From the IMG/VR virus record IMGVR_UViG_3300048672_001051, positions 1-64,000 of that record: DNA of 64,000 nt; one strand, written 5' to 3'. Positions 2,142 through 48,400 of the stretch are shown in pieces. The position numbers and the translations under genes are program-made. Under the pieces are notes generated by a model that was not told where the DNA came from, made no database searches, and saw only the letters and a list, made by a program, of their open reading frames with translations. Position 1 is the first letter of the stretch, and each line of letters begins with the position of its first letter.

Positions 2142-2158
2142 TATGTTATGGACTTACT

Positions 2159-4000: not shown

Positions 4001-4002
4001 AA

Positions 4003-4479: not shown

Positions 4480-4492
4480 GCATATCACTGAT

Positions 4493-7052: not shown

Positions 7053-7054
7053 TT

Positions 7055-11941: not shown

Positions 11942-11948
11942 CATTAAA

Positions 11949-12383: not shown

Positions 12384-12385
12384 TA

Positions 12386-12652: not shown

Positions 12653-13209
12653 CTAACACATCAGCAGCGATGTTTACAGATCAAGCTGAAGTTATAAGAA
12701 TGCAAAAACAACGTGCAGAGCTGTACACTAGAATATACCAGTATGCTGCTGAGGATTTTACAAGTATAGCTGATTTTCAACAATTTTATAGTTTATCGGC
12801 TGTGTGGATGCAATCTCTTGAAACTCAATTGCAAACACTTATGCAAATAATCTCTGTACACGTTCACGATGTCCCGCCGCACTCACACCCGATTGAACCA
12901 CATACACATATTAGCTCAGCGCCAGGTTCGCCCACTAGTCCAAATATTGGTGGTGTAATCACGATGCCTACTGGTTTAGTTACTAACTTAAGTACAAACA
13001 CGTCTCAGATAGTCTGGCGGCCATTAGCTAAACCTACATTTATTAATACAACTTTAGCTATACCAAATATCGAAGGTAATAAGATAGTAGTAGGTGTTGG
13101 TGCTGAGGGTGATGTATTTCCAGAGCAGCGTAGGCTACGTGTAGCTCCAATATTACTTAAACCTACATTGCCGCCAATAATTAGCAGCGCTTTAAAAGGA
13201 TCTTTATGA
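12649..13209 (+). CDS. Hypothetical virion protein with a triple HxH motif
   Basis: Strong SD (aggtgaggag); helical N-terminus, then HVH..HSH..HTHISSAPGSPTSP. Confidence 0.55.
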   Translation: MTNTSAAMFTDQAEVIRMQKQRAELYTRIYQYAAEDFTSIADFQQFYSLSAVWMQSLETQLQTLMQIISVHVHDVPPHSHPIEPHTHISSAPGSPTSPNIGGVITMPTGLVTNLSTNTSQIVWRPLAKPTFINTTLAIPNIEGNKIVVGVGAEGDVFPEQRRLRVAPILLKPTLPPIISSALKGSL

Positions 13210-15080: not shown

Positions 15081-15093
15081 GGTCTGCTCTTTA

Positions 15094-16713: not shown

Positions 16714-16722
16714 GACTTATAA

Positions 16723-18501: not shown

Positions 18502-18506
18502 TATAT

Positions 18507-19433: not shown

Positions 19434-19440
19434 TTTACAG

Positions 19441-19469
19441 AGAGAGTCTATTTAAACAATAGACTTTCT
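19441..19469 (+). promoter_or_regulatory. Intergenic stem-loop upstream of the major capsid RBS
   Basis: agagagtctatt-taaac-aatagactttct: 12-bp stem with one G-U pair, no U-tract. Confidence 0.55.
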
Positions 19470-19494
19470 ACTATACTCTAAGGACTATTTAAAT

Positions 19495-30010: not shown

Positions 30011-30020
30011 GTTTAGACAC

Positions 30021-30046
30021 TGTCGGTGCCTACACAGGCACCGACA
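30021..30046 (+). promoter_or_regulatory. GC-rich intergenic hairpin between sheath and tube genes
   Basis: tgtcggtgcct-acac-aggcaccgaca: perfect 11-bp stem, no adjacent U-tract. Confidence 0.7.
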
Positions 30047-30070
30047 ATAATATTTAAAAAGGAAAATAAC

Positions 30071-30754
30071 ATGGCTTTACAACAATTCTCATCACTAGCT
30101 GGTGCTGATATCAAAGCTGTCTTTGGTAACTATGAGTTTGCAAACCTGCACATGATTAAGTACGGCATTAGCCGTGAAAAAGCTAAAATCTACACACTAG
30201 GTTCACCATCACCGCGCGCTACTGCTCGTGGCAAGCGAACTGTTGGTGGTGCGTTAGTATTCTCGCATTTGGACACTGACGGTCTAGTACGGTCTATGAC
30301 TAAACAAGGTTCTGACGCTAACTCAAATGTGTTTTTATCGAATAGTGAGCTAATTAATTCTGGCTACGGCACTGTTGACGGCAAGAGCAAAACGACCGAC
30401 GAAGCTCGCTCTAAAGCTTTACGCCAAGGTGGTACAATCGTGAGTAATGGACTTCTTGGTACTGCGACTGCTTTTGATCCATTTGCTGCAGACACAAAAA
30501 GTGTATTTAACGCAAATAACTTTGGACAGACTATTGCACCATACCTGGCTGACCAGTTACTACCATTTGACATAACCATTGTCGGTACGTCTGAATACAG
30601 CTCAGATTTATCACAGCGTTTAATTATTAAGAACGTTGAGATCACTAGTGAAGCTTCTGGCACATCAATTGACGACTTGGCGATTGAAAAACAAATGGCA
30701 TTTATAGCAGACACTGTTATAGATTGGAAACGTCTGTCAGAACTTCAAGCTTAA
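30071..30754 (+). CDS. Tail tube protein
   Basis: ATG 30071 with SD aagga; AGADIKAVF, ISREKAKIYTLG, RGKRTVGGALVF, LLPFDITI, GTSIDD; follows sheath. Confidence 0.78.
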   Translation: MALQQFSSLAGADIKAVFGNYEFANLHMIKYGISREKAKIYTLGSPSPRATARGKRTVGGALVFSHLDTDGLVRSMTKQGSDANSNVFLSNSELINSGYGTVDGKSKTTDEARSKALRQGGTIVSNGLLGTATAFDPFAADTKSVFNANNFGQTIAPYLADQLLPFDITIVGTSEYSSDLSQRLIIKNVEITSEASGTSIDDLAIEKQMAFIADTVIDWKRLSELQA

Positions 30755-30775
30755 ATAGTGAGTTAGGAGTTTACT

Positions 30776-31426
30776 GTGAGTAATACAAACACAACTCCGT
30801 CAATTTTTAAGAGCTTCTCTGGTACAGAAACTCGAGTAGTATTCGAGTTTCCTGCCAACTCTACTTCACAGAGTGTGTATATTGACATGCAAAGCATGAT
30901 AACAATTACACACTCTGTTAATAGAGCTAAAATTCCAGTGATACCTTTAGGTGAAACCACAATAACAGGTTTTGCATTAGGTACTAAAACTGTTGCAGGC
31001 ACTGGAGTTAGAGTAGTCTTAACTGACGACGAGCTATACAGGCATATGAATGTTTTTATAGCAGAAAAAGCAACAGCGGTAGAAAATGCTGTCAAAAATT
31101 TTGATCTTGGTCTCCGAGGAGTCCAGTCAATACCTTATAAAAATTATAATGATTTCATGCAAGACGACTTGTCTGAATTCAACATCCACCTAATAACCCT
31201 CCCCGAGCACGACGTAGCTCAAATCAGAATTCAGTCGATCCTCGGCGCAACTATAATAAATACTGGTAAGATTTTTTCAATTGACAATCTCATAACGGAA
31301 GAGACATTTTCGTATATGGCTAGAACTGTTAAAACTGAAGGAAATTTAGACGTACCTTCAAGAACAATAATAAGTTCAAATACAAACCTAACTGGTACTA
31401 ACTTACTAAACAAGTATAAAAGGTAA
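30776..31426 (+). CDS. Tail tube paralogue 2 (possible tube initiator)
   Basis: GTG with aggag; SFSGTE..SVNRAKIPVIPLG..GTKTVAG..FSIDN aligns with tube 1. Confidence 0.65.
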   Translation: MSNTNTTPSIFKSFSGTETRVVFEFPANSTSQSVYIDMQSMITITHSVNRAKIPVIPLGETTITGFALGTKTVAGTGVRVVLTDDELYRHMNVFIAEKATAVENAVKNFDLGLRGVQSIPYKNYNDFMQDDLSEFNIHLITLPEHDVAQIRIQSILGATIINTGKIFSIDNLITEETFSYMARTVKTEGNLDVPSRTIISSNTNLTGTNLLNKYKR

Positions 31427-32029: not shown

Positions 32030-32518
32030 TTGACTGAACAAATTAGACGCAAACAGCCACCAGCTGCAGCAAAACCTGTACAAGAGCCTGAAGCACTTCC
32101 AGAACATATTCAACAACTGTTAGATGAAGAAAATTCTAAAGACGCTGAACTCCAAGATCTTGTAGACAAATTAAAAAGTTTTGATAAAGAGTCTCCTGAC
32201 CTTACTACACTCAAACACTGGGAGAGTAAATATGGTAAAGTGTATTTATCAAAAATACATGAAGATGAGCCTAAATTCTTCCTCTGGCGCTGCCTATTAA
32301 GACTTGAGTGGAAAGAACTTTTAGGTTTAAATGTTAATGATGATTACTTACGCCAAGAGTCTATTATTAAAAAATGCTTACTATATCCAAATCCATCGCA
32401 CGACTTTATTTACACAACAGGCGCAGGTACACTACCAACTCTTGAAAAACAGATCATGTATAAATCTGGATTTGTAAGTACTGATGAAGCTTTATCTCGT
32501 ATAAGTGTGATTGTCTAG
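32030..32518 (+). CDS. Putative tail assembly chaperone
   Basis: TTG with gagg; WESKYGKVY, FLWRCLLRLEW, CLLYP, AGTLPTL..QIM..SGF; follows the tube genes. Confidence 0.55.
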   Translation: MTEQIRRKQPPAAAKPVQEPEALPEHIQQLLDEENSKDAELQDLVDKLKSFDKESPDLTTLKHWESKYGKVYLSKIHEDEPKFFLWRCLLRLEWKELLGLNVNDDYLRQESIIKKCLLYPNPSHDFIYTTGAGTLPTLEKQIMYKSGFVSTDEALSRISVIV

Positions 32519-32519
32519 T

Positions 32520-33041
32520 ATGTTTAATAAATCCGAAAGTGTATTATTTGGTATCAACAGAGCAGTAATAGACTTAAATGGATTTTATGTAGTCTCAACT
32601 AATTGTGAAATATTTGAAAATCCTCGGTTAGTTGTAGACCTTTTAAGCCCACAAGAACTTAAACGCTACGTAAATCTATCTGAGTATTCTGTCACGGCGG
32701 AGTATGAGACTCAACAGACAATTGTGCAGGATAAACTTGTAAAAATATTCGAACACGATGGTAGTAAGTTAGACTTAAACTTAACTCCAGCCGGTGTTGT
32801 CGAATTAATAGCTGAAAGTATTGCAAATAAGTCTTGCGACTATTTAAGGCATGCCCAACGAAACTACGATTTAATTGCAGAAGAAACTTTCTTTGTAGAC
32901 CAAATGTGTGCCATAGTTTCGTACTACATGAATACAAGTTACGACATTGTAAAAACGTTACCTATTAATGAGATATTTACACGCTACGCTGTCTGCCAGA
33001 AAGCATTTCCTAACCAAGTACAACCTATAACAGAAGATTAA
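32520..33041 (+). CDS. Putative second tail assembly chaperone
   Basis: ATG right after the previous stop; PAGVVELIAESI resembles the AGTLPTL segment of the previous gene. Confidence 0.45.
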   Translation: MFNKSESVLFGINRAVIDLNGFYVVSTNCEIFENPRLVVDLLSPQELKRYVNLSEYSVTAEYETQQTIVQDKLVKIFEHDGSKLDLNLTPAGVVELIAESIANKSCDYLRHAQRNYDLIAEETFFVDQMCAIVSYYMNTSYDIVKTLPINEIFTRYAVCQKAFPNQVQPITED

Positions 33042-33043
33042 TA

Positions 33044-36000
33044 ATGGTTAATAAATACGATGGTAGTCAAATTGACTACGAAGCCTATATGGATTACAAA
33101 GGGCGTCAAAAAGACCCTGATCCATATTCAGTAACTTCTAGCGATATTTATCTTAAAAAGAAAAATGAACAAGAATCAGAGATAATGTCATCTCTGATTA
33201 TGGGTGCAGGTTATGCAGCCTCTGCGGCTGCAGCAGCCCACTATGTTAATAATAATCAAACAGCTCTGGAGTTACTAAATAAACTCCCAGGCAATGATAA
33301 CTTGGACAAAAGACTAAGGTTTAACAGAGCTGCTAATAACACTTTTGAAGGCATCGAACCAAATTTTAATGGTTCACTACGCCCTGTATCTAATATACTA
33401 CAGTCAACTCTTCTTAATCTAGAAGAGTTATCCCCCCTCCATATTTTAAAAACACTCCAACTCTCAAGCGCTGCAAGCTTATTTACAGCTAATGTTAATT
33501 TAGCCGAAGACGTACATATCAGTGGTGATGTAGTAAATAACTACAACGACTACGTACAAAAATTGCTAAAAGCACAAGGTAACCGTGAGCTGACCAGTAA
33601 TGACGCTAGGAATGGTTTTATTTTAAGAGACGGTAAGTTGTATGGAGTTACATCTAATGGTTTAATAGACTTGAACGATATTGCTTTAAATAAAGCTAGA
33701 ATAGTTCATACAACATTAGATATAGGTGGCAACAGATCTCCAAACAGGATATTTGAGAAGTACTCAAATATTTACGGAGCAGCGTTCGATAGAGAAGCTG
33801 CAGACAAAGCTAACCTAATGTTTGTTGGCGCTAGAGACACTGCAAGTTTACTTACAGATTGGACTAGAGCTTACGGTAGGTATGCTATGGAGATTGGCTA
33901 TAAAACTTTAGATAACCCTGTAGCCGGATTTGAAGAAATATTAAATATGACAGGCTTGGGTGATAGTAAATTTGTTAATAATAAATACTACCAAGCAATT
34001 AAGAATAAATTAAATATTAGTTTAGGTACTGGCGGCGCTTACGATTTAAGTACAAGAGAGTCTCTTAAAATAACTGCTAAGAACATAGCAGTAAAATCTG
34101 CAGCTTTGTATGTTGGTTATAATATTTTGAATAGCGGTCTGAGTGCCATTACTGGCGAGGAGAATCCATATCATCAAGGATTAATTTCTGGTCTTGCGGC
34201 ATCTTACGCTAATATGAGTGTTGGTTTTGCTAAGCTATGGTCCGACAACTTTCAAGATTATAAAAATTCTCAAGAAGCTGCGGCAGAAGGTTCTACTTCG
34301 CTACTAGCACTTGCAGGACTGCCACTTGCTGGCGCTATGCTAGGTGCTAACACGGCGTTTGCTCAACGTATGTACCATACTAAGAAACATGGCATGCTGA
34401 GCGCTGCGACGCATTTTGGAACTGAGCGTACATTTAAAAGTGATAAAATTTTTAGCATGCTAGGGCTAGCTAAAGAAGAAAAGATCCTTAATAGGTATGC
34501 TAAGATAGGCGCACTAGCTGGCGGGCTGTTAGCCTTACCATTCTTACCTGGAGCTTTGGTTGGTAAGTCATCAGATGAGCTTAAAGCTGAGTACAGTGGT
34601 GAGAAAGAAGTAGCTGTAAAAGCTAATAGATATTGGCTAGCTGGCGGTACTGCGTATGAAGGTGAGAATGTTAAATACTTTAAAAAACATATTATCGCTG
34701 AAACTATAGCTAATGCTAGAAATAAAACATATTACGAGTCAATGTCTCAGAAAAGAGCTATGGACCCAATTTTTAGTCCACTAGCTTATTTAAAAAATCC
34801 TTATGCGCGTGAAGAGGCTACAAAAGAATCTATGCCGTATCCTGTATGGGGTATGAACGTTACTTATGGGTCTTTCTTTGGCGAAGCTTTTCAAGGGACT
34901 TTAGGTCAAATAATAAAGCCAACTGTAATTAATCCAGAATTTTTAAAAAATTATGTGATTAGTAAAAAAGATATATTTAGCCTTGAAAATAGTTTAATTA
35001 AAAAAACTTTAAGTACTTCAGAGTCTGATAATGATAACCAAGTTTCCGATGGGTCGATAGCTAATGCGGCAGCTGAACAAGATAAGTTGAAACGAGGCGC
35101 TCGTAGCATATTTTCAAAGTTAGATGAAGATTATGTAACACAAACCTCCGAAAAATCTCCGGATAAGTCTATGATAAAGACTGGTGATATGCTGCGAAAA
35201 GAATCTGCAGAGATAGACCAAACTAAAATAGCTTCATCTGCTGCTTATGTAGCCGCAGCTGACTTTACAGGTCTCAAAGGTTTTACAAGCTCTATGATTC
35301 TTGGAAGTGCGGGTATAGATCCAACTGACTATAAAAAACAATTAGCAATGTCCGGCGATGCTAATAGCGCACAAAGCCAAATACAAGATTTAAATCTTGG
35401 AGATATGGCAGGGCTTGGTGAATTCCAAAGACGTATCGTTCCAACTTCTGCGGCATCGAAGAAAGAATATATCAACCCAATGAAAAATAATATGCCGTCT
35501 TGGCTGCCAAGCGATGAGTCTAAGTACTATTTAGACTTTAGTATAGGTAACCCTTACGACAAAATAGAAAATGGCGCAGTAAGGCTGCCTGGGCGTGGGT
35601 TTGCAGCCCTAAACCCTACTGTTAAAAACTTAGATCCTGAAAAATATCCACTAGTTTATCAATATAAAATACTAGCAGATGTCGCAGCAGGCAGTCCAGA
35701 ACAGATTGCAATGCGGAATTACTTATTATCTAATAAAGACCAACTATCTGAAACAGAGCAAAAGATATTTTTTACAAGTCTTGAGCAAACTGAAGCTCGT
35801 AAAGAGAAACGTAAATTTCATGAATATACTTCAAAATTTGAAAGAGCAAATTTTAGCGCTTTTCAAGATGTTCAGAGTAGTCTTTGGAATACTATTACGC
35901 ATAATTCTGAAAGTGTATTAGAGCCTTTAACACCTTTTAGACCAGCCGCTAAGTTCCTACATAAAAGAACGGCTATTGAGGACTATGTAAAGACTCAATT

Positions 36001-36979
36001 GCAAGGATCAGACGTGGGTATATGGACCAACCCGTATAGCCACTTTATAGAGCCTGCTATAAACAGGACTTATGGGTTATTACCTGGAGTACAAAAGCCG
36101 GCAGAAGCTTCTGAAAAAGAAGCTGTAGACGAATATTTTGATAAATTATCTTTACTTAGAGCTATAAAAATAGGTAACATTAATAGTGCTAAAAAAACTG
36201 TAATAGCATCTAACTACGCAGGTATTAGAGATAAAGAGTCTATGGATAAGCTGAGAGCAGCTTTACCAGAAAATCAAAGACTTTACTTAGAATCTTTTGC
36301 TAAAGAAAAAGATGTAGATAAAAGAAAACAAATAATAGCTATGCTGCCAACAGATATACGGCAGGCTTATGCGTCTATTTGGGCCAATATAGATATTGCA
36401 GACGCAGCTAAAGCAGCTGGCAGAGATCCTTTAAAAGCTATAGAAGATAACTATTATAAAGATACAGAAACTCTTAAAAAAACTCTAGGCATAACTTTAG
36501 ACAAAAACACTAAAGATAGAATTAAAAAATCTACCGAAACAATTACCGACCGTGGTGAAAAAGCGTCAGCTGTTAAGGAAAAAGAAGCTGAGGCAATACG
36601 TCTAGAGGCAGCGAGGCGTGAAGCACAGGCTTATGTAGACAAACAGACAGGCACTCCAAGTCAAAATTGGAAGGGCTGGGATCCACGCTTAACAACAGCC
36701 GATATAAAATTAAGAACACTAAGTATTGGCCGAGAAGACATTCACAAGTACGGTTACTGGAAATCTGATCTAGAGCGTAATGAGCGGTTAGTAGGTTTAG
36801 ACTCAGAGAGAGAAGTTATTAGAGACTTTGATAGAATAAAACAAGAGTTAAAATCGCAACAACAGCGTAAAGCTAGAATAACAACCGAATTGAATAAAAA
36901 CGGCTTCAATACATCTAAAATAGATATAGTGCCAGCGGCACAAAATACAGTCAGAATACAGGACAGAAGAACTAACTAA
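33044..36979 (+). CDS. Large virion protein with several hydrophobic segments (tape-measure-like or ejected protein)
   Basis: 1311 aa, follows the chaperones; Ala/Gly hydrophobic helices (LLALAGLPLAGAMLGA, IGALAGGLLALPFLPGALVG); charged helical C-terminus. Confidence 0.55.
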   Translation: MVNKYDGSQIDYEAYMDYKGRQKDPDPYSVTSSDIYLKKKNEQESEIMSSLIMGAGYAASAAAAAHYVNNNQTALELLNKLPGNDNLDKRLRFNRAANNTFEGIEPNFNGSLRPVSNILQSTLLNLEELSPLHILKTLQLSSAASLFTANVNLAEDVHISGDVVNNYNDYVQKLLKAQGNRELTSNDARNGFILRDGKLYGVTSNGLIDLNDIALNKARIVHTTLDIGGNRSPNRIFEKYSNIYGAAFDREAADKANLMFVGARDTASLLTDWTRAYGRYAMEIGYKTLDNPVAGFEEILNMTGLGDSKFVNNKYYQAIKNKLNISLGTGGAYDLSTRESLKITAKNIAVKSAALYVGYNILNSGLSAITGEENPYHQGLISGLAASYANMSVGFAKLWSDNFQDYKNSQEAAAEGSTSLLALAGLPLAGAMLGANTAFAQRMYHTKKHGMLSAATHFGTERTFKSDKIFSMLGLAKEEKILNRYAKIGALAGGLLALPFLPGALVGKSSDELKAEYSGEKEVAVKANRYWLAGGTAYEGENVKYFKKHIIAETIANARNKTYYESMSQKRAMDPIFSPLAYLKNPYAREEATKESMPYPVWGMNVTYGSFFGEAFQGTLGQIIKPTVINPEFLKNYVISKKDIFSLENSLIKKTLSTSESDNDNQVSDGSIANAAAEQDKLKRGARSIFSKLDEDYVTQTSEKSPDKSMIKTGDMLRKESAEIDQTKIASSAAYVAAADFTGLKGFTSSMILGSAGIDPTDYKKQLAMSGDANSAQSQIQDLNLGDMAGLGEFQRRIVPTSAASKKEYINPMKNNMPSWLPSDESKYYLDFSIGNPYDKIENGAVRLPGRGFAALNPTVKNLDPEKYPLVYQYKILADVAAGSPEQIAMRNYLLSNKDQLSETEQKIFFTSLEQTEARKEKRKFHEYTSKFERANFSAFQDVQSSLWNTITHNSESVLEPLTPFRPAAKFLHKRTAIEDYVKTQLQGSDVGIWTNPYSHFIEPAINRTYGLLPGVQKPAEASEKEAVDEYFDKLSLLRAIKIGNINSAKKTVIASNYAGIRDKESMDKLRAALPENQRLYLESFAKEKDVDKRKQIIAMLPTDIRQAYASIWANIDIADAAKAAGRDPLKAIEDNYYKDTETLKKTLGITLDKNTKDRIKKSTETITDRGEKASAVKEKEAEAIRLEAARREAQAYVDKQTGTPSQNWKGWDPRLTTADIKLRTLSIGREDIHKYGYWKSDLERNERLVGLDSEREVIRDFDRIKQELKSQQQRKARITTELNKNGFNTSKIDIVPAAQNTVRIQDRRTN

Positions 36980-36981: not shown

Positions 36982-39900
36982 ATGAAACTAGACAGAGAAT
37001 TATTACTTACAGCTATTGGTGGCTTAACAGGCGCAGCAGCTGTAGACAGCGAAGGTGACTTCTTTGCAGCCCCTGTAGGGGCTGCAATAGGAGCTACAGC
37101 TGCAAATTATCTTGACATCAAGACGATTGACCCTGGTCGCTTAATACAAAATAATCGCACATTGCAGTTAAGCCAAGATAAGCGACTAACCAGAGCTGAG
37201 CAGTTAAGAGAGTCTTTGACTGAATTGTATGGTGCTGGCGGAAATACTCCAGTGCATCAGTATGCTAGTCAAGTTTTAAGTAATTCTTCTGCAACTGAGT
37301 ATGACTTATCAGTAGCACTGACTCAGTTAAAGTCTACAGGCGAGTTAAGCATGCTAACAAATCCGCAAGTTAAAAGTGAGCGCCTAAGTGTTACAAAAGT
37401 TGCGCCAAATGCTAGTGATTCTGTTAAATTAGCCGCATTTGAAAACAAACTGAAAAGCCTTGGGTACACTGGAAAAAATTTAACAGATAAGCTTGCTTTA
37501 TTTGAACCGTTAATTTCAAATTCTAAAGGTTTAATTATAAACGGAGACTCTATAACTCTAGGCGAGCAAGGCACTATACGACTTACTGACAGTTTAGGCG
37601 GGAATATAACCAACGGTTCTTATTACGCCACACAAAGACTTAATCCTTTTGCTAAAGCTGCCGCAGACGGAATGAATGTTAAAAGTATGGCGGAAGCTGT
37701 AGGTATAAATTTAATTGATGCTGCTAATTCTGATGTTTTAAGAGAGACGCTTGAGAGAGGTTTTAAACAAGGTTTAAGGCCGGATGACATGCAAGCTATG
37801 CTAGCACAGAGTGACTTAGGCTTAAGTTCTAAAGTACAAAACTTTGCAGAAACTGCTTACCAATATAGTGAAGATGGTACTAGCGCCCTAGTTAAAAATA
37901 GTGCTACAGCAAGATCAGAATTGTCTGAAATAGGTATAAATAAAAGAATTTTAAACGAGAGTGATTATGGCGTAGCTTTAAACATAGATACACGTACCAA
38001 TGGCCTAAACACTAAAAATCCTTTTAAGAGACTAAACACTAACTCTCCAGATGGTGTTAGGATATCTGACTACCTGAAGACAAGAAACTATTTAACTGCG
38101 CAGAATGGTGGCTTTATACAAGAGGGTGTTAAGACTGATAAGTACACTGTAATGTCAACAGCAAAGCCTAAGCCTCTGGCTAACGCTATGGGTATGATTG
38201 AGCGTAATGCGTACACCACGGGGACTAGAGGCGATCTGCCGGGTATAAATAAAGCAAGCTTGCCTGCCGGTGTTAATGCAACAGCTGACAGTGAAGTTTT
38301 GACTGCTATGTCAAAACTTGGACTGATGCCTGAGGAGTTTAGAGGTTCAGTCCCACTTAAACGTATTACCGTCGATGCTGAGCAATTTAATGCAGTAGCA
38401 GACCGTTTAGGACTACCTGCAGATGTTAGGCTAGGAGATGGCTCTGCATTGGGCAGTAGAACGCTATTAAATCAGTTTGAACATAAAGAAACTCAGCGTT
38501 TTATCATACCTAAAAATTCAAAAGGTGAGTACGCAGTAAGCTCTGCTGTTCAGACGTTCATTGACAGCAAACTGTCAGAGGGTGTAGGTTTTACAGGTTT
38601 AATGACCATACCTAACTTAGATGAAAGATCTAAAGATTTAGAAAGAATTAAGAAACTGGAGGTTGGTTATACTCCAGAAGATATTGCTGTCTTAAAAACA
38701 AATGTTGAGAATTCTCAACAAGCTCGTAAAAAAGTTAAAGATTTATTTGTAAACGGCTTACCAAAAACAATTAGCGCAGAAGAATCTGAGTTTATAAAAA
38801 ATGCGCCAATAGCTATAGCTTTTGACCAAGAAAAATTTAACGCTACAGTTAGAAGCAGATTTAGTGGCCAAGGGACGATCACTCCAGATATACTGGACAC
38901 CTTAGAGCAACACTTACGAAAAGGTGTTGCTCTGCCAGACTTAGGACTGCAAGGAAAGGGTGCTAGAAAATTAAGACAAGCTATTGCAGAATATAAACAA
39001 GACTCCGATTTAACAAATTTAAAAAATTATCATAAATCGAAGATAATGTCTAATGTGGATTATAATGATGCTTCTGCAGTTTTAAAAGGAGCTGAGAATG
39101 GAACTCTGCCGCAAGTTACAACTGAACAGTTAGCGAAAGCTAAGCAGCAGGTGCAAAACTATTATGCTAGAATGCTTCAACTTACATCGCGTAAATCTGA
39201 TGTGCAGCATAAAGAATATTCAACTGGCATGTATAACAAACTCACAGCTATTATGGGTGAAGATGTTGTCGACACATCTAAGGTTATGGAATTATTCCAA
39301 GAGCATAACAGAGTTGCTGCGGTTCAGCCACTAGCTAATCACGAGGTTTTAGGTTTAGACGCTAAAGGCTCGCCTATAAAAGTATCGACTGAGTTTAATA
39401 AATGGAGATTCACTGGAGCTAGAGAAGTAACTGACGACTTCGGAGTTACAAGCCTAGAACTTAACTTAGAAGGCTATAGCCGAGTAGGGTCCCAAGCTAG
39501 GGTAAAATCTTTTGGGGTTAGTTCTAAACAAGCCGTAGGCATGCTCAACCAAGATATGTTTGACGTAGCTTATGCAGTGGCTGATCAATTAGAGCGTGGT
39601 CTAATTCCAGCAGAGGGCACGCTAGTTGATCCGCAAGCTTTGACTACTGATGAGAAATTAATACGTCTACTTAGCGGATTCCCCGTACCTCCTGACAAGA
39701 CAGATGGAGAGTTGTTAGGCGAGTCAATTTTAGACAGGACAACAAAGTACAATCTGATGGTCGGTAAAAATACAAGTATTATTGTAGATGCTAGTGATAC
39801 TCAAGCTTCACTTGTTAAGACACTACAAAATGATTTGAAAGCTGGTACCCTGACAACTGGCATAAACAAAGGTTTAAATGAAGCTGCTATTAGTAGTGTT

Positions 39901-42474
39901 GCTAGCCAGACATTTGATAGTAGTTCAGCTGCCAGATTAGTCTCAGCACTATCTCAAAATAAAGATGGGGCTGGCGTACTGCACTCTGCCTATTACGATG
40001 CAGCAAGAGTCGCTTATAATAGTGGTAAGTACAATACAACTGCCGGAGCTTCTTCAAGAATGTTAGACTTTTATACAAACATTGGATTTAGTCCGGTTGG
40101 TCATGCGAACGGTGAAGCTAGCTTAGCAGCATTTGGTCAAGCATATCATGAACATGTGGGTAAATATTTTAACGGGTCTGCTGGATTTAACTCAGTTGAT
40201 ATGTTTAATAACCCTGCGATACAGTCTTTTTTTAATGCAACTAATGAAACTTACCATTGGAGTAGTCTTGACAGTCGAGCTACCTACACATACGGTGCAA
40301 GATCAGGCGATAGAGGTATGTCTTGGAATGCTCAGAAAAATTTAATAAACTCTGGCTATGCACCAGAGGTGTTAGACTTATTTGGCACGCATGACGCAAA
40401 TGCTGTCTACGATTTAAAAGCTTTTAGCAACACTATGAAAAAATCTGACTCAACTATAAATAGTTTTATTGCAGATTTACCTCAAGGTAAATTTACAGAG
40501 CTAATGCAAGACTTACGCGCAGCTAAACATGAAGACTATGCAGATATTTTTACTAAACATGGCGCAAACCGCGAGCTTGTGCAAGGAGACTTTATAAGTT
40601 ACGCGCTACCCGCAAACGAGTTTGGAATTGAAACTTTACCACTTTATAAGCAGTCTACTTATCGAGTTGGAACGTATGTAACTCCAGAAGGTCAAGAGAT
40701 GCGTAAAAACTTATCTACGTTACCTTTACAAATAATTCGCGCTAGTGAAGCAGCAGCTAGAGACCCTAGCGAGCTTATGCGTGAGAGACATCTTAAAGTT
40801 TATCAAGACTTGCTGACAGAGTATACTTCGGAAATATCGAACACTATTCAAAATTCTAGCGGCAATATTCTTAAAGAGTCTACTAAACGTTATGTTGAAA
40901 ATTCTTCATACTCTATTGTTGCGCCAGCAGAAGGTCATATAAAAGACCTTGCAATTGAATATAACTTAACTGGCAAAGGTCTGCCAACAGTAGGTGTAAG
41001 TGAGGAAGGTGCTGTAGAGCGTTTAAGACTTTTTGGAGTAGACACTGAGCACAAAGATTTTAACCTTGAAAATCATATGGACGCAGATGGCAGATTGTTG
41101 GACGCAGATGGTAACAAAGTGTTTTCGATACAATCTAGAGAACCAGCTTTCTCGACAAACTCTACAAGACTAGTAAATTACACTGTCATACCAGATGCAG
41201 AAACTGCAACTAAAAATACTGTATTCCACAGTGCAGCTGACACTCATTATTCTAAATTAATGTTTGGAGACTTTGACTTTGACCACGTATTTGAATATTT
41301 TCCAAAAAGAAACTTAAGTGCAGAAGAGTACGCTAACATATTAGCTATAGGTGAGAATCAAGCTAAACTTAGTAGAAGTTCAATCGAGTTGGCTCAACAC
41401 TTAGGTGTTAAAGGGTCAGCAAAAGATATGAAAAGCTTATCAGACTTTTTAGACGAAGCGTCTAAGTCAGGGGCCACTGGTACAGAACTAAATACTGTTG
41501 CAGCAGAATTGTATGCTCAGCACTTAGAGGGTTCTGCTGTGAAAGCTGGTCAACGTAAATCGTTGACACCAACTATAACAAATTTTGCAAACTCTATATT
41601 TAAGTCTGTTGAAAAAGCATCAAGTCCTGGCACTCAATTGTTTAACGACCAAGCCACTTTAATGCACTATTTAGTCGAAAATATGATTAAGTCGCAGCAC
41701 ACTAAAACTGGTGCCCAAAATAACTCTGTAAGTGAAGTGGAGAAATTAGTAAGTGCTCGTGAGAAGTTTTTAAAAAATCCTTCTGCGTATGGTGCGCAAT
41801 ATACAGATGCATTAGATCAGCTTTTACATTCTTTCAGTGGTGATATGAATGACAGTTTAAAAGCACGGGTGACTTCAGCAGTAGATGGCATTAAGCAAGC
41901 GGAGATGATACATGCACCGAGTTTAGCTGGCAGTGTGCAACTACCAACAGATTTTGGTAGAGCAGTTGCAGCAACTGCTGGAGAGTTTAGCGACATAGTT
42001 GAAAAACTAGATGATTTTGTACATCACGCTAAAATTTTACCAGTAGACGAAGGCGCTGTAAATATTGCTAGAACTGCCAGTTTCGGGTATGATGAGATCA
42101 TGTCGAACATTAAAACAAATGTTGCTAATAATAAAGTAGTCTTGGCGTTAGCTGCCGCTGGTCTTGTAGGTACAAGTATAATTACTCAAAAGTCACCAGA
42201 CTTTAAGACTAACACTAAAGCAACAGCTAACCCGTCTTCAATGATGATGGCACCTTCTAAACAAACATATAAAGATAGGAAGGAGCAAGACACATTAAAC
42301 GGTTTCAACTACCAAACACAATCTAACTACTTAACTAATAAAGACTTTGTAAAACAAGCTGTTTCTGTTCAAGGGCAGTACACTAAAGCAAAATCTGAAT
42401 TAGATAATTCAATTAAGAGAAGTGTATTTGGTAATAATATATCTAACGTAAGAATAGAAAGTTACTATGAGTGA
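36982..42474 (+). CDS. Putative single-chain two-barrel (DPBB) RNA polymerase, probably virion-associated
   Basis: SREP (R1386) and FGDFDFDH (D1430-D1434) resemble the beta-prime RxP...DxDxD active site; LGDGS (D486) and VKSFGVSSK (K842/K849) resemble beta motifs; hydrophobic N- and C-termini. Confidence 0.65.
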   Translation: MKLDRELLLTAIGGLTGAAAVDSEGDFFAAPVGAAIGATAANYLDIKTIDPGRLIQNNRTLQLSQDKRLTRAEQLRESLTELYGAGGNTPVHQYASQVLSNSSATEYDLSVALTQLKSTGELSMLTNPQVKSERLSVTKVAPNASDSVKLAAFENKLKSLGYTGKNLTDKLALFEPLISNSKGLIINGDSITLGEQGTIRLTDSLGGNITNGSYYATQRLNPFAKAAADGMNVKSMAEAVGINLIDAANSDVLRETLERGFKQGLRPDDMQAMLAQSDLGLSSKVQNFAETAYQYSEDGTSALVKNSATARSELSEIGINKRILNESDYGVALNIDTRTNGLNTKNPFKRLNTNSPDGVRISDYLKTRNYLTAQNGGFIQEGVKTDKYTVMSTAKPKPLANAMGMIERNAYTTGTRGDLPGINKASLPAGVNATADSEVLTAMSKLGLMPEEFRGSVPLKRITVDAEQFNAVADRLGLPADVRLGDGSALGSRTLLNQFEHKETQRFIIPKNSKGEYAVSSAVQTFIDSKLSEGVGFTGLMTIPNLDERSKDLERIKKLEVGYTPEDIAVLKTNVENSQQARKKVKDLFVNGLPKTISAEESEFIKNAPIAIAFDQEKFNATVRSRFSGQGTITPDILDTLEQHLRKGVALPDLGLQGKGARKLRQAIAEYKQDSDLTNLKNYHKSKIMSNVDYNDASAVLKGAENGTLPQVTTEQLAKAKQQVQNYYARMLQLTSRKSDVQHKEYSTGMYNKLTAIMGEDVVDTSKVMELFQEHNRVAAVQPLANHEVLGLDAKGSPIKVSTEFNKWRFTGAREVTDDFGVTSLELNLEGYSRVGSQARVKSFGVSSKQAVGMLNQDMFDVAYAVADQLERGLIPAEGTLVDPQALTTDEKLIRLLSGFPVPPDKTDGELLGESILDRTTKYNLMVGKNTSIIVDASDTQASLVKTLQNDLKAGTLTTGINKGLNEAAISSVASQTFDSSSAARLVSALSQNKDGAGVLHSAYYDAARVAYNSGKYNTTAGASSRMLDFYTNIGFSPVGHANGEASLAAFGQAYHEHVGKYFNGSAGFNSVDMFNNPAIQSFFNATNETYHWSSLDSRATYTYGARSGDRGMSWNAQKNLINSGYAPEVLDLFGTHDANAVYDLKAFSNTMKKSDSTINSFIADLPQGKFTELMQDLRAAKHEDYADIFTKHGANRELVQGDFISYALPANEFGIETLPLYKQSTYRVGTYVTPEGQEMRKNLSTLPLQIIRASEAAARDPSELMRERHLKVYQDLLTEYTSEISNTIQNSSGNILKESTKRYVENSSYSIVAPAEGHIKDLAIEYNLTGKGLPTVGVSEEGAVERLRLFGVDTEHKDFNLENHMDADGRLLDADGNKVFSIQSREPAFSTNSTRLVNYTVIPDAETATKNTVFHSAADTHYSKLMFGDFDFDHVFEYFPKRNLSAEEYANILAIGENQAKLSRSSIELAQHLGVKGSAKDMKSLSDFLDEASKSGATGTELNTVAAELYAQHLEGSAVKAGQRKSLTPTITNFANSIFKSVEKASSPGTQLFNDQATLMHYLVENMIKSQHTKTGAQNNSVSEVEKLVSAREKFLKNPSAYGAQYTDALDQLLHSFSGDMNDSLKARVTSAVDGIKQAEMIHAPSLAGSVQLPTDFGRAVAATAGEFSDIVEKLDDFVHHAKILPVDEGAVNIARTASFGYDEIMSNIKTNVANNKVVLALAAAGLVGTSIITQKSPDFKTNTKATANPSSMMMAPSKQTYKDRKEQDTLNGFNYQTQSNYLTNKDFVKQAVSVQGQYTKAKSELDNSIKRSVFGNNISNVRIESYYE

Positions 42475-45400
42475 TACAATAAATACATCATATAGCCAAG
42501 AACCTGGTGAAATTTTAGAAATAAATGATATAAATTTGGAGGTTCTTCCGAGTGATATCGCTATGTATGCTGATAACGCAATATATGAAGACGTATTTAT
42601 TCGTTCAAATGGTGCGTTTGCATTTAGGTCAAAACATTCACACTCTAAAATAATTTTAACTCTCCCGATCCCGCTTATTGCGGGTTCGGGCAAGTACAGT
42701 GCACTAGAAAAAAGTGCGCACGATAATGGCATCCGTTTAATAAATGAATTAAATAGCTACCCTTTTTGTTTTGTTAAATCATCACGTATTAGCTCGTACA
42801 TCGGTACATCAATTGCCAGCGAATATTTAGTATTTGGTGTGGATGAACTTCGATTAGTTATGGACTTAAATGTGCCTAATATCTTGTTTGCTGAAATAAC
42901 ATTACTCTATCATGATCATACAAATTATACTTCAAGTTTTTTATTCAGAGAAGATTTTGACACAGAGTCTGAGAGTGGCGCTGCAGTGTCTAGACCTGCA
43001 GATTCGAAACTATTTGTGCAGTACATGGACGCGCTACAAAACTCTAATAAAGCGTTTAATTACAATCAATTTATATCTGAAGTTAAAACAACTGTAAAAA
43101 ATTACGGTGAAGAGTCGACTTTAGGTCTTGTTAACCTGCTGACACCGTACTTTTTCGATAAAGACGATCCAAGTCTTAAACTAGGCGATGGTGAAGTTTA
43201 TGAAGAATTTAGCCTGTCTTCTGCAAACCTTGCAGAGCATGTCTTATCTACATCAATACTGCAAACTGCCAACGGAGATGATGAGTCGGCTACAATACGG
43301 CCATCGACTAAAAAAGAAAATGGTTCAAAAATAGTTGCTGCATATCGTGGCGACGTGCAGTTATTTAGTAATATTAACGTAGTAAATGCAGTAATATGTT
43401 CTCGTAAAAATTCATTTGCAAAGCAGTTTATTGGCAGTCACCAACACCCATGCTTACAGTATATCGGGAGATATCCTGCAAGAGTTGAGATTAAAACAAT
43501 GTTTAACTCTATGAACTCTTATAAGATGAATGTTGAGTCTGTTACGGCAATGTTTAAAACACTGTTAAACAAGATTGACAGTAATAACATGACGTTCCCA
43601 GAAGCTAACGCATACAATCACATGAAAGTACGATCGCTGCCTACAAGTTTGCTGCTAATTGAAAATATCATGCCAGATCAATGCACCATAAGCGCATCAT
43701 CAGATAACAAAGATATAGATGTTATAGATTGTACTTTTATAGAAAGTTCTTTAAAAGAATTTATAGATCCAAAAGAAGTTAGTGTAAAAGACTTAATAAA
43801 AGTTGCATCCGGTGCAGATACTTATAAAATAATTGCTGAGTACATAAAAGTCCTAGCTAACGCTAAAGATTTTAATACTGCAACCCACTCGACTTTGGTA
43901 AGATCTTTGTATGTAATTTACGACTACTTGCGAGAAGAAAACTCTGCATCACAATATAAAGTTCAGTATAGTAAAGATTTGGATAGCACTGCACTAAATA
44001 ACTATAAAATGAAGTCGGACAAAGAGGCTCGAGCGATAGCGACGGGTAGAGCCCAATTAAGTTTAGTTGCAGATATAAAAGATCCTATAGCATCAGCTAA
44101 TAATATTAAAAATAGTTTACAATCTTTAAGTATTTATCTGATTCCGAAGCTAAACAACCGCAAAGTTTTAGCGACTAATGAGGCAACAAACCTTATGAAA
44201 GTCTCTGACGATTTCATTGTCACTGACAAATCTGGAGCAAAAGTCGACGCATCTCTTCGTGATATATATAGCTTTAATGGAACTGCTGAATCAGCTTTAG
44301 ATAGTTTTGCTCTAGACCTAGGTGCATTATATAATGTTGGTGATAGTGTAGCTAAACAAATGACTACGCTAGGAACATCAGATACAGTAGCTAAAAATTT
44401 GAATGCACAGTTTATATCGTCATTCACAGGTGAAAACTACAAAGATTTGTCTTTAGATTTATTGTATAGCGATGTAGAGAACCGCCGTAAATTAACACCG
44501 TTTTTCTTCTTAGTGTGCAGACCACATTTTAGTAGAGAAGAGATGTATACAGCATTTAAACTTTTAGACAATGAAACTATAAATCAAATACAAGATAAGA
44601 TAAATTTACAAGTAACTCGAGAGTATGGATTAAGTGCCGCAACAGATTTAGGTACTAAATTTCTAAAAATGGGTGAGTATAGTTATAAGCCAGGGTCTGA
44701 GACTCAGTTGAACGGCTCTGGAACTACTAAGTATTTTGCTAGCGCAGAAACTAATGATAAGTACGATGCTTTAATTACAAAGTATGCAGACATGTATGGC
44801 TTAGAACCATCTCTTGTGAAAGCGGTAATTGAAACAGAGTCTCATTTTAATCCAAACATAGTTTCACCATCTAATGCAAAAGGCTTGATGCAACTTATTG
44901 ACACAACTTTTGCAGCTCAAAAAGTTGGTAGTAATCCTTTTGACCCTGAGCAGAACATTAATGCTGGCTGCAAGTATTTAAGTGAAGTAATTAAGAAAGC
45001 TAATGGCAATGTTAAAAATGGTTTAAGTTTTTATCACAGCGGACCTGCGGCGGATTTAAATAACTTAGGCCCTGCTGGAAGAGCTTACGCGCCAACTGTG
45101 TTTGAAAATCAAAAGAAATATTCAAAGTCACTGACAAATTCGACAACACCTAATAGACTTAAGCCGGATCAAAATGTAGCTAATCCGTTCCTAGGTACAT
45201 CTAATGGATTTACAAGCAATACGCAACCAATTATCAACGCGTCGGCATACAGAGATGCGTCAGAATTTAAAGTTGATAGTGTAGTTGACGGAGATACATT
45301 TGATGCTACAAGGCAACTTGACGGTAAAAGTCTAAGAGTTAGAATAAAACTTTTAGATACGCCTGAATCTGTAGGTATCTTTAACGGCACTTCTTTGCAA

Positions 45401-48400
45401 GCTCAGTGGTATGGCGCAGAAGCTAAACAAAAGCTCCGCAGTTTATTACCAGTTGGAAGTATAGTTAAGATAACTGGACTTGAAACAGACACAACATATA
45501 GCGAGAGAACTCTCGGCGTAGTAATTCGTGCTGATAAGTTAGATGTAGCTTTAGAGATGATTAAGACTGGTCATGGCTTAACTACGTCTGGTGTAAACAC
45601 AGCTTATACTCAAGCGCAAGCTAAGGCTAAAGCAGACCAAGTTGGGATGTGGGCAGAGCCTGCTAGAGTAATGCCTCCAGCTCAATTTAGAGCAGCACGT
45701 AAAAAAGCCGCAGAAGAGAGTGGCAAGAAGGAACCAGAACCGATTGTGCGCGGCTCAGAAGAAACTAAAAAAGATAACTCCAACTTAAAGAATACTTATG
45801 CACCTTTGAAAAAATCTTCACCTGTCACAAGTCCATATGGTTGGAGAACTATATTTGGAAAACAGCAATTCCATTACGGAGTAGACTTTGGCGTACCTAT
45901 AGGTACTCAAGTAGTTTCTGCTGCTTCTGGTACCGTGTCTAGAGTTTTTTCACAAGCTAGTGGTGGAGGTCTAATTGTAGAAGTTGCGCACGATGCTAGA
46001 GGATTTGTTACGCAGTATATGCATCTGAGCAAGGCTCTTGTATCAGCAGGCCAACGAGTAAAAGCTGATGAAGTAATTGCATTGTCTGGCAATAGTGGTG
46101 GACGAAGCACTGGGGCTCATTTACACTATGGTGTATCTTATAATAAAACGCGCATAAACCCATTTATGACCGTAACACTTTCAACGATACCTACAGACAC
46201 TCCACTAATAGCGGGAGATTACATCCACCCTGACGCCACTAAGAGTGCTGGACAGCGTGGCGGTGAGACTGATGGTGGTGCTGGCTTGAACTTGTACTTA
46301 GCAGGTGGCTCGAAAGAAGCTGATGTTAACGTGTTTTATGAGTTGCAAAAAAGTGAGTTTGGAGAATTGTACTCTGTATACAATGAAAAACTAATGCTTG
46401 AGAAACATTTAGAGCAGTTATTGTATAATTATAACTACACAATGGACACAGCATTTCCAGTAATAAAAGCTTATATAACTGTTGGTAATGAAAATGATGA
46501 GCTTATAGAAGGATCCACAATCCCAACTAGTCAGTATTTTGAAGTGAACGGACTTCAAAATTTTAAGATGCAATGTAACGACGATAACAACCCTGTTGAC
46601 GTTGCTATGTTTACATTAGCTAACCCATCTTTTTTACAAACAACAGGTGCAGTCGGTTTAACAAAGCAGTACGAAATTGACACAAGCCAACCGGGAACTG
46701 AGTATAATTTAAGCTTTATTGAAAATAAAATTAGATTACGGCCAGGCATGAAGTTTCACATAAGAGCTGGCTATGGTAATAACCCTAACAACTTAAAACC
46801 AATATTCAATGGAATGATTACAGATATTTCATCACCTATGAGTATGACTTTAAATATTGTCGCTGAAAGTTTTTCAAGAGAGTTGTTGTATACTGAAATG
46901 TCTTCTGATCAACCTAGAGACTTAACTGGAAACGATAACGGCTCAACCGGATATCTTTTAGGGCAGTCTATGTTGCAAGAAAGCATAACCCACTTTGGGA
47001 AGTCTTTTAGTGCACTTCGACGTATAACAAAAGTGTTAAACCCATTTAATGGAACGTCCACATATGACGGCGAAGTTCGAGATCCTGAAGCTAAAGCTAT
47101 GTTGGCGCCACTTAGCCCTACATCGTATATACCGCCAATGCTTACCATATTTAGTGGTTCTGGTTTTAGACAACGACGATTTACAAACTTGTACTCAGCT
47201 GACATAGAGAAAGTTCACGACGAGTTTGAAACTGGTATTATTAACAGCATCTCAAGGTCAATTGATTGGACTAGAAAAAGTAGTTATGGGTATTTTGTAT
47301 ATGGAACAACTCCGTGGCAAATTGTTAAGGAGATGGAACATAGACATCCAGGCACATTAGCCAAACCTCTATTGTATGAAGACCGGATGACAATGTTTTA
47401 CGGTACAAAAGAGCAATTATACGTGGCTAGAGATTTGAATCCTGCATATATGGCTCAGATTTCTTTAAAAACAACTTTACAAAAATTATCAGCATTAGCT
47501 CCAGAGGCGTCCGACGCTTTAGCGAAGAACATTGATTATGCGGAAGAACGTCCTAAGCGCTTAGAGCCAGCTACAGGCTTCCATATGCTCAGCACAAAGA
47601 CAAATATAATATCTAACGGTCTGGGTATATCTAATAAGTATAAAACGAGGATTAACAGTATATATAGCAAATCTGTCTCGGACTTTAAGAAAATTGATGG
47701 CGAGAATCCTGCAGAGGTAGTTCAAATAGATGACAACTTAAATCCTTGGGAAGTTCGTGATAAAACTATCGCTATGGGTGGTTGTAATAGCAGGTATATG
47801 GCTTGGCTGTATGGCACTCAAGAGTTAAAATCTGAGTGTGAAACAATGTATGGCGGTAAGATAGTACTAGTTGGCGACCCGACTATAAAAGCTGGCGACT
47901 ATGCTTTTATATACGATAACGACCGTAACATGGCAGGTATTATAAAAGTACGTGAATGCCAACACAATTTCAATATGGAGTCTGGGTTTACAACTGAGAT
48001 AGTTCCAGGACAGTATGTCGAGTGTGCAAATTTTGTTTGGTCTTTATTTTTCTTAAAGCTAGGCTTTATGTGTAAAATGACTTCAATTAAATTAGAGTTA
48101 TCTCAAGTAGATACTTTAACAACCGCGTCTATTGCACAAGAACTTGATTACTACTATAATTATATATACGAGAAAAATACGAGCATGTCTGATGCAGCTA
48201 TAGCTGCAATACCAGTAGCTGCCTACACAACATTAGGCACATTCTTAGCTTACTCCGCTATTTATACAAATGGTAAGAGCAACTTTGTAAAAGCTATGCT
48301 GATAAATGGTGCAGATTTAGCAACTAGCGTGGCTAAGAAAGGCTATGCAAAACTAGCCACTGTTCAGTTTAAAAACGGATTTTCACTTGGAAAATATTTA

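Follow-up and report, generated by a model that had tools for sequence, protein, structure and literature searches.

A candidate two-barrel RNA polymerase with a predicted polymerase fold, encoded in the tail operon of a giant contractile-tailed phage

Introduction

The tail-assembly genes of a giant contractile-tailed phage include one for an 1830-residue protein with the apparent active-site motifs of a cell-type (two-barrel) RNA polymerase, which raises the question of whether a polymerase is encoded where a tail tape measure might be expected. The gene lies in the window analyzed here, the 64,000-nucleotide stretch at positions 1 to 64,000 of IMG/VR virus record IMGVR_UViG_3300048672_001051. 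An initial annotation, made from the sequence alone, proposed a very divergent fused beta/beta-prime polymerase that is packaged, injected for early transcription and possibly tethered to the membrane. The reading frame is intact, and each motif was found at the residue given in that annotation. The conservation of those residues and the predicted fold support the proposal, and the protein is probably an enzyme delivered with the DNA to start transcription, although its presence in the virion, its injection and its membrane tethering are inferred rather than shown. Features of the gene and its neighbors are collected in Table 1.

Table 1. Features of the candidate polymerase gene and of neighboring tail genes in the window.
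Feature	Coordinates (nt)	Strand	Residues (aa)	Supporting observations
Tail sheath and two tube paralogues	27992..31426	+		Sheath at 27992-30010
Two-gene tail chaperone pair	32030..33041	+		Homologous to ME3_33/34 and 0305phi8-36 gp143/144 (PMC2147016)
Upstream protein, candidate true ruler	33044..36979	+	1311 aa	Homologue of ME3_35 (E 9e-273) and of the 0305phi8-36 virion protein gp145 (E 3e-29)
Whole gene, candidate single-chain two-barrel RNA polymerase	36982..42474	+	1830 aa	Met1 conserved in 47/47; stop overlaps the hub gene start by 8 nt
N-terminal pair of short Gly/Ala-rich hydrophobic helices, glycine-zipper-like	36994..37107	+	5-42	Hydrophobic stretch aa 7-21; helices 5-21 and 29-42 in the model; G13, G17 and G37 in 42-44 of 47; weak Gly-zipper Pfam hit in one homologue (P0042) and weak match to a Gly-rich OmpA-family segment
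N-terminal globular alpha/beta domain	37189..38181	+	70-400	pLDDT about 85-97
First half of the beta-like barrel (DPBB-B), with D486-G487	38350..38541	+	457-520	D486/G487 in 46/47 in one alignment and invariant in two others; strands 457-464, 488-492, 499-511
LGDGS	D486 codon at 38437		484-488	
Lineage-specific, low-confidence helical insertion inside the beta-like barrel	38599..39336	+	540-785	pLDDT 33-56; occupied in only 30-40% of homologues; D486-K842 distance 105 to 478 aa across the family
Second half of the beta-like barrel, with K842 and K849	39346..39546	+	789-855	K842 and K849 in 47/47 each; strands 789-855
VKSFGVSSK	K842 at 39505		841-849	
Beta-prime-like barrel (DPBB-A), with R1386-E-P1388 and the D1430/D1432/D1434 triad	40903..41298	+	1308-1439	pLDDT above 90 over nearly all of it
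SREP	R1386 at 41137		1385-1388	
FGDFDFDH	three Asp at 41269-41283		1428-1435	
Long helix, bridge-helix candidate (inferred)	41479..41619	+	1500-1546	Near-invariant R1525/K1526; pLDDT about 90
Helix with HxLVENLIKSxH, trigger-loop-base candidate (inferred)	41635..41700	+	1552-1573	Conserved E1566, N1567, K1570, H1573
C-terminal hydrophobic helix	42136..42192	+	1719-1737	Hydrophobic stretch aa 1719-1734; highest hydropathy window in the protein (1.57); preceded by invariant N1717; conserved NK..L..G.AAL.G.ALLTQ..P.F
Conserved C-terminal tail, possible docking module	42193..42471	+	about 90 aa	115 +/- 8 aa from N1717 to the end across the family; conserved F1816/G1817
Baseplate hub with SLT, SNase and M23 domains	42467..48931	+	2154 aa	

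Conservation of the active-site residues

A DxDxD motif is not by itself evidence of a polymerase. With 6% Asp, about 0.4 such motifs are expected in a protein of this size, which has only one, and five other reading frames of at least 100 codons in the window carry a similar motif. The conservation of the motif, however, is beyond chance. An exhaustive search of 1.84 billion representatives with aa 1101-1830 returned 51 hits besides the query itself, and 46-47 full-length homologues, with 16-43% identity, were aligned. K842, K849, R1386, P1388, D1430, D1432 and D1434 are invariant, and D486 is conserved in 46/47 in one alignment and invariant in the others. Of 1200 aligned positions in aa 401-1600, only 16 are invariant in 46 sequences, and these include all seven residues named in the initial annotation, for which the probability is roughly (16/1200)^7, or about 1e-13, had the residues been picked at random. 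The beta-side residues, which the initial annotation considered weaker than the DFDFD/RxP pair, are as conserved as those of the beta-prime side.

The residues between the three Asp vary freely, such that the motif ranges over DFDFD, DYDLD, DMDQD, DHDQD and the canonical DYDGD and DFDGD, within the consensus REPAxGPxS...FGDxDxD. The spacing from the Arg to the first Asp is 44 aa, as compared to 35 aa in E. coli beta-prime. The lengths of the core segments are nearly constant across the family, with length variation confined to three insertion points.

Despite this conservation, no sequence method links the family to any polymerase. Searches of Pfam, PHROGs and NCBIfam with the protein and with six family members gave no polymerase or tape-measure family, with weak FDF and wHTH hits falling below cut-off. 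Searches of the PDB by phmmer and by family profile gave nothing above noise, and hhalign of the family profile against E. coli beta-prime and beta, as single-sequence templates, gave probabilities of 1% or less.

Predicted fold

A template-free AlphaFold2 model of aa 401-1600 (pLDDT 77.7, pTM 0.74, with 457 residues at pLDDT 90 or above) is a mixed alpha/beta globule with strand-rich barrels around both motif sets. When the model was compared to the PDB with Foldseek, all 50 listed hits were entries containing RNA polymerases. By chain, 49 are largest subunits (bacterial, archaeal, plastid, Pol I/II/III) or QDE-1, and the fiftieth is chain A of an influenza polymerase cap-snatching complex. 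The best E-value is 2e-4, with probability 1.0, and QDE-1 aligns over 520-590 columns, although the scores are modest, with TM of 0.1-0.25 and high rmsd. Against viral models, the hits after ME3_36, the family member from Acinetobacter phage ME3, are two unannotated or "minor tail" phage proteins, followed by giant-virus RNA polymerase large subunits.

Structural support for the beta-like half is weak. Foldseek with aa 1-900 gave second-largest polymerase subunits in 46 of the 50 best rows, but the best E-value is 0.44, and given that the PDB holds many copies of Pol II, these rows count as about one weak hit. The listed alignments (76-160 columns) are too short to cover the N-terminal alpha/beta domain, for which no relative was recognized, although the residues that they do cover were not reported.

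It is very unlikely that the DxDxD site belongs to a different metal-dependent enzyme, such as a nuclease, glycosidase or nucleotidyltransferase, and that the polymerase-like fold is an artefact of modelling or searching. The commonness of DxDxD, the absence of sequence homology to polymerases and Foldseek E-values of only about 1e-4 would allow for it. However, none of the 50 listed hits comes from another enzyme class, a second and independent set of motif residues (D486, K842 and K849) lies in the order and arrangement expected for the partner barrel, and the R-x-P...DxDxD spacing matches beta-prime.

Gene order and a possible role as tape measure

The gene lies in a conserved block consisting of the sheath, the tubes, the chaperones, the 1311-aa gp145-like protein, the candidate polymerase and the hub. 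The initial annotation placed the gene between the tail chaperones and the hub. The hub does follow directly, but the 1311-aa gene separates the candidate polymerase from the chaperone pair. The gene order is conserved in ME3 and four metagenomic contigs. The only deposited phage with a member is ME3, in which the protein, ME3_36, is annotated as "hypothetical protein". A tblastn search of 50,697 phage records with three divergent members found only ME3. Single-protein scans of genome contigs and of viral contigs found no further loci, and another search returned only the window's own contig.

The gene occupies the slot of gp146, the putative tape measure of Bacillus phage 0305phi8-36. The protein might therefore be mainly the tape measure or tail-lumen scaffold of this lineage, with the polymerase-like core a structural relic, or a DNA-gripping module that helps to pull or guide the genome into the cell without making functional transcripts. 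Its hydrophobic ends and its rapid divergence are in keeping with this, as it scores 91 bits to ME3_36, compared to 899 and 703 bits for the flanking genes, and tape measures also diverge quickly. This alternative is nonetheless unlikely. The models of aa 1-1600 show globular alpha/beta domains, with 457 and 324 residues at pLDDT 90 or above, rather than a long helical ruler, and the only extended helical part is a dispensable insertion absent from many members. A relic would not keep every catalytic residue invariant at about 20% identity. The 1311-aa protein, which directly follows the chaperones, is a better candidate for the ruler, and its homologue gp145 was found in virions by mass spectrometry, according to the GenBank note.

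No relationship to gp146 could be detected by sequence. A profile of the family C-terminus scored 4.6 bits against the C-terminus of gp146, within the range of 500 shuffles, such that an eye-catching collinear resemblance is not supported. The full family profile gave no hit to 0305phi8-36 gp145, gp146 or gp147, nor to the giant tail proteins of Moorella phage MTATph1. Detection of gp146 by mass spectrometry thus does not transfer to this family, given that gp146 is not detectably homologous and has no DxDxD.

Proposed function

The best explanation, to which a probability of about 0.65 is assigned, is that the gene encodes a single-polypeptide RNA polymerase of the two-barrel (double-psi beta-barrel) superfamily, very far diverged from all described families. 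In this proposal, a beta-like barrel split by a variable helical insertion supplies D486 and the lysine pair, and about 450 residues later a beta-prime-like barrel supplies R1386-x-P1388 and the Mg-binding triad, although the two motif sets have not been shown to face each other. A long helix, inferred to be bridge-like, and a conserved His-containing helix follow. The catalytic core, about aa 400-1600, is flanked by the confident N-terminal domain of unknown fold and, at both extreme ends, by conserved short hydrophobic helices.

Given that the gene always sits between the gp145-like tail protein and the hub, the protein is most likely built into the tail interior during assembly. It would be expelled ahead of or with the DNA when the sheath contracts, may be held at the inner membrane by its terminal helices, and would transcribe the first genes to enter, independently of the host polymerase. 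Later genes would be read by the host enzyme, because neither a second family member nor another large DxDxD protein was found in nt 20,860-234,900 of ME3. RNA synthesis itself is inferred, as are virion location, ejection, membrane anchoring and timing, and there is no proteomic evidence for any family member. A folded core of about 130 kDa would probably not fit the lumen of a tail tube, so storage would need an unfolded or extended state.

Alternatively, the protein could be an active two-barrel polymerase that is not part of the virion, made late together with the tail genes and acting inside the cell, for example on late genes or as a primer-making or RNA-templated enzyme like QDE-1. The location of the gene in a late structural operon, the size of the folded core and the presence of QDE-1 among the best structural matches are consistent with this view. 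It is considered unlikely, however, as the position between two tail-interior or hub proteins is strictly conserved in five independent genomes, and the terminal hydrophobic helices and constant-length C-terminal tail are conserved, as in tape-measure and ejection proteins. In addition, a polymerase made only late cannot start infection, and ME3 has its own DNA primase/helicase.

A more far-reaching version of the proposal remains tentative. In the ME3-like lineage of jumbo contractile-tailed phages, an ancestral tail-lumen protein in the gp146 slot may have been replaced by a free-standing RNA polymerase that travels down the tail tube unfolded, refolds at the inner membrane anchored by its two hydrophobic ends, and both starts transcription and helps to draw the 230-kb genome into the cell. 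It would then be the founding member of a previously unrecognized branch of the superfamily and the first tail-delivered polymerase in a myovirus.

Two-barrel RNA polymerases are the universal transcription enzymes of cells, and each very divergent viral branch informs how the minimal enzyme works and evolved. This family is absent from a dedicated survey of jumbo phages, which lists such enzymes for group 1 and for two group 3 phages but not for the group of ME3 (PMC7824862), and from the viral polymerase table of the 2024 study of Thermus phage P23-45, which has no Acinetobacter or ME3 rows (PMC10770324). If active, the protein would show that delivery of a polymerase through the tail is not a peculiarity of one Thermus siphovirus but also occurs in contractile-tailed jumbo phages, and would explain how these phages could start infection without the host enzyme. 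It would also provide a compact polymerase, with a smallest member of 1463 aa, in a culturable system (ME3 is a phage of Acinetobacter baumannii).

Comparison with known systems

The gp146 protein of 0305phi8-36 (2537 aa) holds the identical gene slot, between the gp145 and gp147 homologues, and likewise ends in a hydrophobic helix followed by a short tail. It was assigned as a tape measure from tail length only, and it too does not directly follow the chaperone pair (PMC2147016).

Neurospora QDE-1 and the YonO-like polymerases carry both barrels in one chain, in the order beta-like then beta-prime-like, as the protein described here appears to do, but there is no sequence-level relationship. 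QDE-1 is a eukaryotic RNA-silencing enzyme, and the YonO-like enzymes are non-virion prophage or phage enzymes, one of which exists in 0305phi8-36 outside the tail module (ABS83659.1, PMC7824862).

[quoted passage not shown] Like the protein described here, for which presence in the virion is inferred, it is encoded among other giant virion proteins and evolves very fast. It belongs to a podovirus-like phage, no sequence similarity to it was detected, and it was not among the 50 listed Foldseek rows, which did include QDE-1 and the cellular largest subunits.

The initial annotation regarded the place of the gene as unexpected, but a virion RNA polymerase linked to a tape measure already has a precedent in gp96 of P23-45 (PMC10770324). 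The protein described here is probably, like gp96, a single-chain two-barrel polymerase, and both proteins have a DxDxD triad, are encoded in the tail module at or next to the tape-measure position, and have membrane-type hydrophobic segments and no sequence similarity to known polymerases outside the motif. No PDB chain was matched by sequence to the present family, although gp96 may not have been among the chains searched. P23-45 also has a paralogous non-virion polymerase, and none was found in the scanned part of ME3. The gp96 protein has 5002 aa and comes from a non-contractile siphovirus, and its polymerase is the N-terminal fifth of a true ruler that also carries a metallopeptidase. Here the phage has a contractile tail, the M23 peptidase is in the hub gene, a separate 1311-aa protein follows the chaperones, and the 1830-aa protein appears to be essentially polymerase plus end modules, with no long ruler in the models of aa 1-1600. 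The gp96 protein nevertheless provides the proposed model for the protein described here, that of injection through the tail and transcription of the first genes to enter.

Motifs in the predicted protein

The intact ORF on which this analysis centers encodes 1830 aa and lies on the IMG/VR contig IMGVR_UViG_3300048672_001051, which at 229,656 bp is the size of a jumbo phage. Each motif and hydrophobic stretch was found exactly where the initial annotation had placed it, as listed in the table. A single DxDxD is not unusual, given that about 0.4 are expected in a protein of this length and Asp content and that five other reading frames of the window carry a comparable motif. Therefore, the bare motif carries little weight, and the weight comes from the evidence that follows.

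Features of the candidate polymerase and of other genes and regions described in the text; residues are those of the protein named in the row
Feature	Sequence	Nucleotides	Residues
Candidate polymerase ORF	window	36982-42474 (+)	1830 aa
LGDGS	candidate polymerase		484-488
VKSFGVSSK	candidate polymerase		841-849
SREP	candidate polymerase		1385-1388
FGDFDFDH	candidate polymerase		1428-1435
Hydrophobic stretches	candidate polymerase		7-21 and 1719-1734
Predicted globular N-terminal domain	candidate polymerase		70-400
Predicted helical insertion, low confidence	candidate polymerase		~540-785
Predicted strand-rich module	candidate polymerase		1308-1439
Baseplate hub	window	42467-48931	2154 aa
Lytic transglycosylase (SLT)	baseplate hub		769-867
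Staphylococcal-nuclease-like domain (SNase)	baseplate hub		957-1063
M23 peptidase	baseplate hub		1134-1232
Second chaperone-like protein	window	32511-33041
Two genes with inteins	window	4929-7052 and 9746-11941
Intein of the terminase large subunit	terminase large subunit (731 aa)		147-266
Region of higher GC content	window	1-2000
ORF with YadA-head repeats	window	2096-4000
ME3_104, single 16,260-nt ORF	ME3	104783-121042 (2784-19043 of locus L010)	about 5,400 aa
Distant relative of the tail module	Moorella phage MTATph1 (locus L004)	12513-19869

Homologues and conservation

An exhaustive search of 1.84 billion representatives with aa 1101-1830 found 52 proteins, including the query itself. Of these, 47 had E of 1e-10 or better, and most were 1,460-2,440 aa long and aligned to the end of the query. 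In a full-length alignment of 47 sequences, with 16-43% identity to the query, very few positions are conserved, but these include exactly the residues predicted in the initial annotation. D486 is conserved in 46/47 sequences in one alignment and is invariant in two others, and is accompanied by the conserved G487, whereas K842, K849, R1386, P1388, D1430, D1432 and D1434 are each conserved in 47/47. Positions 2 and 4 of the DxDxD motif vary freely (F, Y, L, M, W, H, K and F, L, Y, G, N, Q, D, A, respectively), and the variants include the canonical DFDGD in homologue P0042 and DYDGD in homologue P0009.

The upstream consensus REPAxGPxS resembles the N-R-x-P-x-L-H...S element of beta-prime. In E. 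coli rpoC, R425 lies 35 residues before D460, and in this protein R1386 lies 44 residues before D1430. Further invariant or near-invariant residues include R408, R416, K994, S1114, G1125, K1298, K1477, R1525/K1526 and E1566/N1567/K1570/H1573. The core segments are of almost constant length across the family, such that, for example, 1114-1386 is 275 +/- 14 aa and 1386-1434 is 48 +/- 3 aa, and all length variation is confined to three insertion points.

Predicted fold

An AlphaFold2 model of aa 401-1600 was built with the 46-sequence alignment and without templates, and reached a mean pLDDT of 77.7 and pTM of 0.74, with 457 residues at pLDDT 90 or above. The model is a mixed alpha/beta structure, with strands around D486 and around K842/K849, and with a low-confidence helical insertion between those two regions. 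These are followed by a strand-rich module that carries the Asp triad in the loop before its last strand, and then by a 47-residue helix and a second conserved helix. Foldseek against the PDB listed 50 rows, all of them entries that contain RNA polymerases. By their chain letters, 49 are largest subunits (plastid, archaeal, bacterial, Pol I/II/III) or QDE-1, and the fiftieth is chain A of an influenza polymerase cap-snatching complex. The best E was 2e-4 with probability 1.0, and QDE-1 aligned over 520-590 columns.

When the model was compared to predicted viral structures, the hits were, in order, both halves of ME3_36 of Acinetobacter phage vB_AbaM_ME3, a "minor tail protein" of an uncultured siphovirus, an unnamed protein, and then giant-virus polymerase large subunits. 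The "minor tail protein" and the unnamed viral protein (BFVD entries A0A8S5SD80_1 and A0A7R7G2L5_2) match the model over 938 and 1083 columns, with E of 8e-9 and 4e-7. This is better than any annotated polymerase, suggesting that they may be further tail-associated polymerases.

A second model, of aa 1-900, reached pLDDT 75 and pTM 0.66, and shows two short N-terminal helices, a very confident globular domain and the same beta-like barrel. Although the PDB search with this model gave no significant hit (best E 0.44), 46 of the 50 best rows are second-largest polymerase subunits (Rpb2, Pol III/IV/V, vaccinia), aligned over 76-160 columns. Given that the PDB is crowded with Pol II entries, this counts as one weak but appropriate signal. 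None of the listed alignments is long enough to cover the N-terminal domain.

Sequence searches

Sequence methods say nothing about the family, which matters for its novelty. Searches of Pfam, PHROGs and NCBIfam, of the PDB by phmmer and by family profile, and hhalign comparisons to E. coli beta and beta-prime all failed to link the family to any polymerase or tape measure.

Genomic context

The neighborhood is a contractile-tail module that is collinear, gene for gene, with that of Acinetobacter phage vB_AbaM_ME3, and more distantly collinear with that of Bacillus phage 0305phi8-36. The order is sheath, two tube paralogues, a small protein, a two-gene chaperone pair, a large gp145-like protein (1311 aa here), the candidate polymerase gene and then the hub. 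The second chaperone-like protein gives a weak sigma-70 subfamily hit (E 0.022, 15 bits against a cut-off of 126), which is probably due to chance. The baseplate hub combines SLT, SNase and M23 domains, and a nuclease in a hub is unusual. The same three-gene block, of gp145-like protein, a member of this family and hub, recurs on four metagenomic contigs that carry divergent members. ME3_36, which is 1603 aa long, has the motif DHDQD and is annotated as hypothetical, is a full-length member at 1252 bits.

In 0305phi8-36 the slot holds gp146, a 2537-aa virion protein that was assigned as the tape measure on the basis of tail length (PMC2147016). This protein has no DxDxD and no detectable similarity to the family, not even at the C-terminus. 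In Moorella phage MTATph1, which carries a distant relative of the tail module, a transposase gene sits between the giant tail proteins and the hub-like "endolysin", and the giant proteins have no DxDxD. The candidate polymerase gene diverges far faster than its neighbors, as it scores 91 bits to its ME3 orthologue ME3_36, as compared to 899 and 703 bits for the flanking genes and 463 bits for the sheath.

Elsewhere in the window, two genes carry inteins (Intein_splicing plus Hint), one of which is the terminase large subunit, where the intein lies ahead of the Terminase_3/6N match. GC content is 0.51 in the first 2 kb, as compared to about 0.35 in most of the window, and a nearby ORF carries YadA-head repeats, as in a fibre or adhesin. 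In ME3, the very large ORF ME3_104 is annotated as hypothetical and lies next to tail-fibre genes.

Relation to tape measure proteins

The protein is probably not a tape measure in the classical sense. No long ruler helix is predicted in aa 1-1600, the only extended helical part is an insertion that many members lack, and the gene directly after the chaperones is that of the 1311-aa protein. The protein does share with tape measures and ejection proteins its slot, a conserved glycine-zipper-like N-terminus, a conserved C-terminal hydrophobic helix and a C-terminal tail of constant length.

Proposed function

The most likely reading is that of a tail-borne virion RNA polymerase, analogous to gp96 of phage P23-45. 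The gp96 study showed that a two-barrel polymerase fused to the tape measure transcribes pre-early genes, and proposed that it acts at the membrane while DNA enters (PMC10770324). For the protein described here, RNA synthesis, presence in the virion, ejection and membrane anchoring are all inferred, and a folded core would not fit a tube lumen, such that an unfolded or extended storage state would be required. No second family member, and no other large protein with a plausible triad, was found in ME3 nt 20,860-234,900, and later transcription would then depend on the host enzyme. The hypothesis of the initial annotation passed each of the refutation tests set for it. We put the probability of the polymerase identity at about 0.85, and that of the full reading, including delivery with the virion for early transcription, at about 0.65.

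Comparison with known phage polymerases

A description of this family was not found in a 2026 review of jumbo phages, in the ME3 genome announcement or by full-text searches, and among 50,697 deposited phage genomes only ME3 carries a member. A survey of jumbo phages lists two-barrel polymerases for group 1 phages and for two group 3 phages, one of which is 0305phi8-36, where the enzyme is a YonO-like gene elsewhere in the genome, but lists none for group 2.2, to which ME3 belongs (PMC7824862). The table of viral polymerases in the P23-45 paper has no Acinetobacter or ME3 rows. A virion-delivered, single-chain, two-barrel polymerase that is encoded in the tail module is already known. The candidate described here is architecturally distinct, with a contractile tail, a free-standing gene without a ruler, and its own N-terminal domain.
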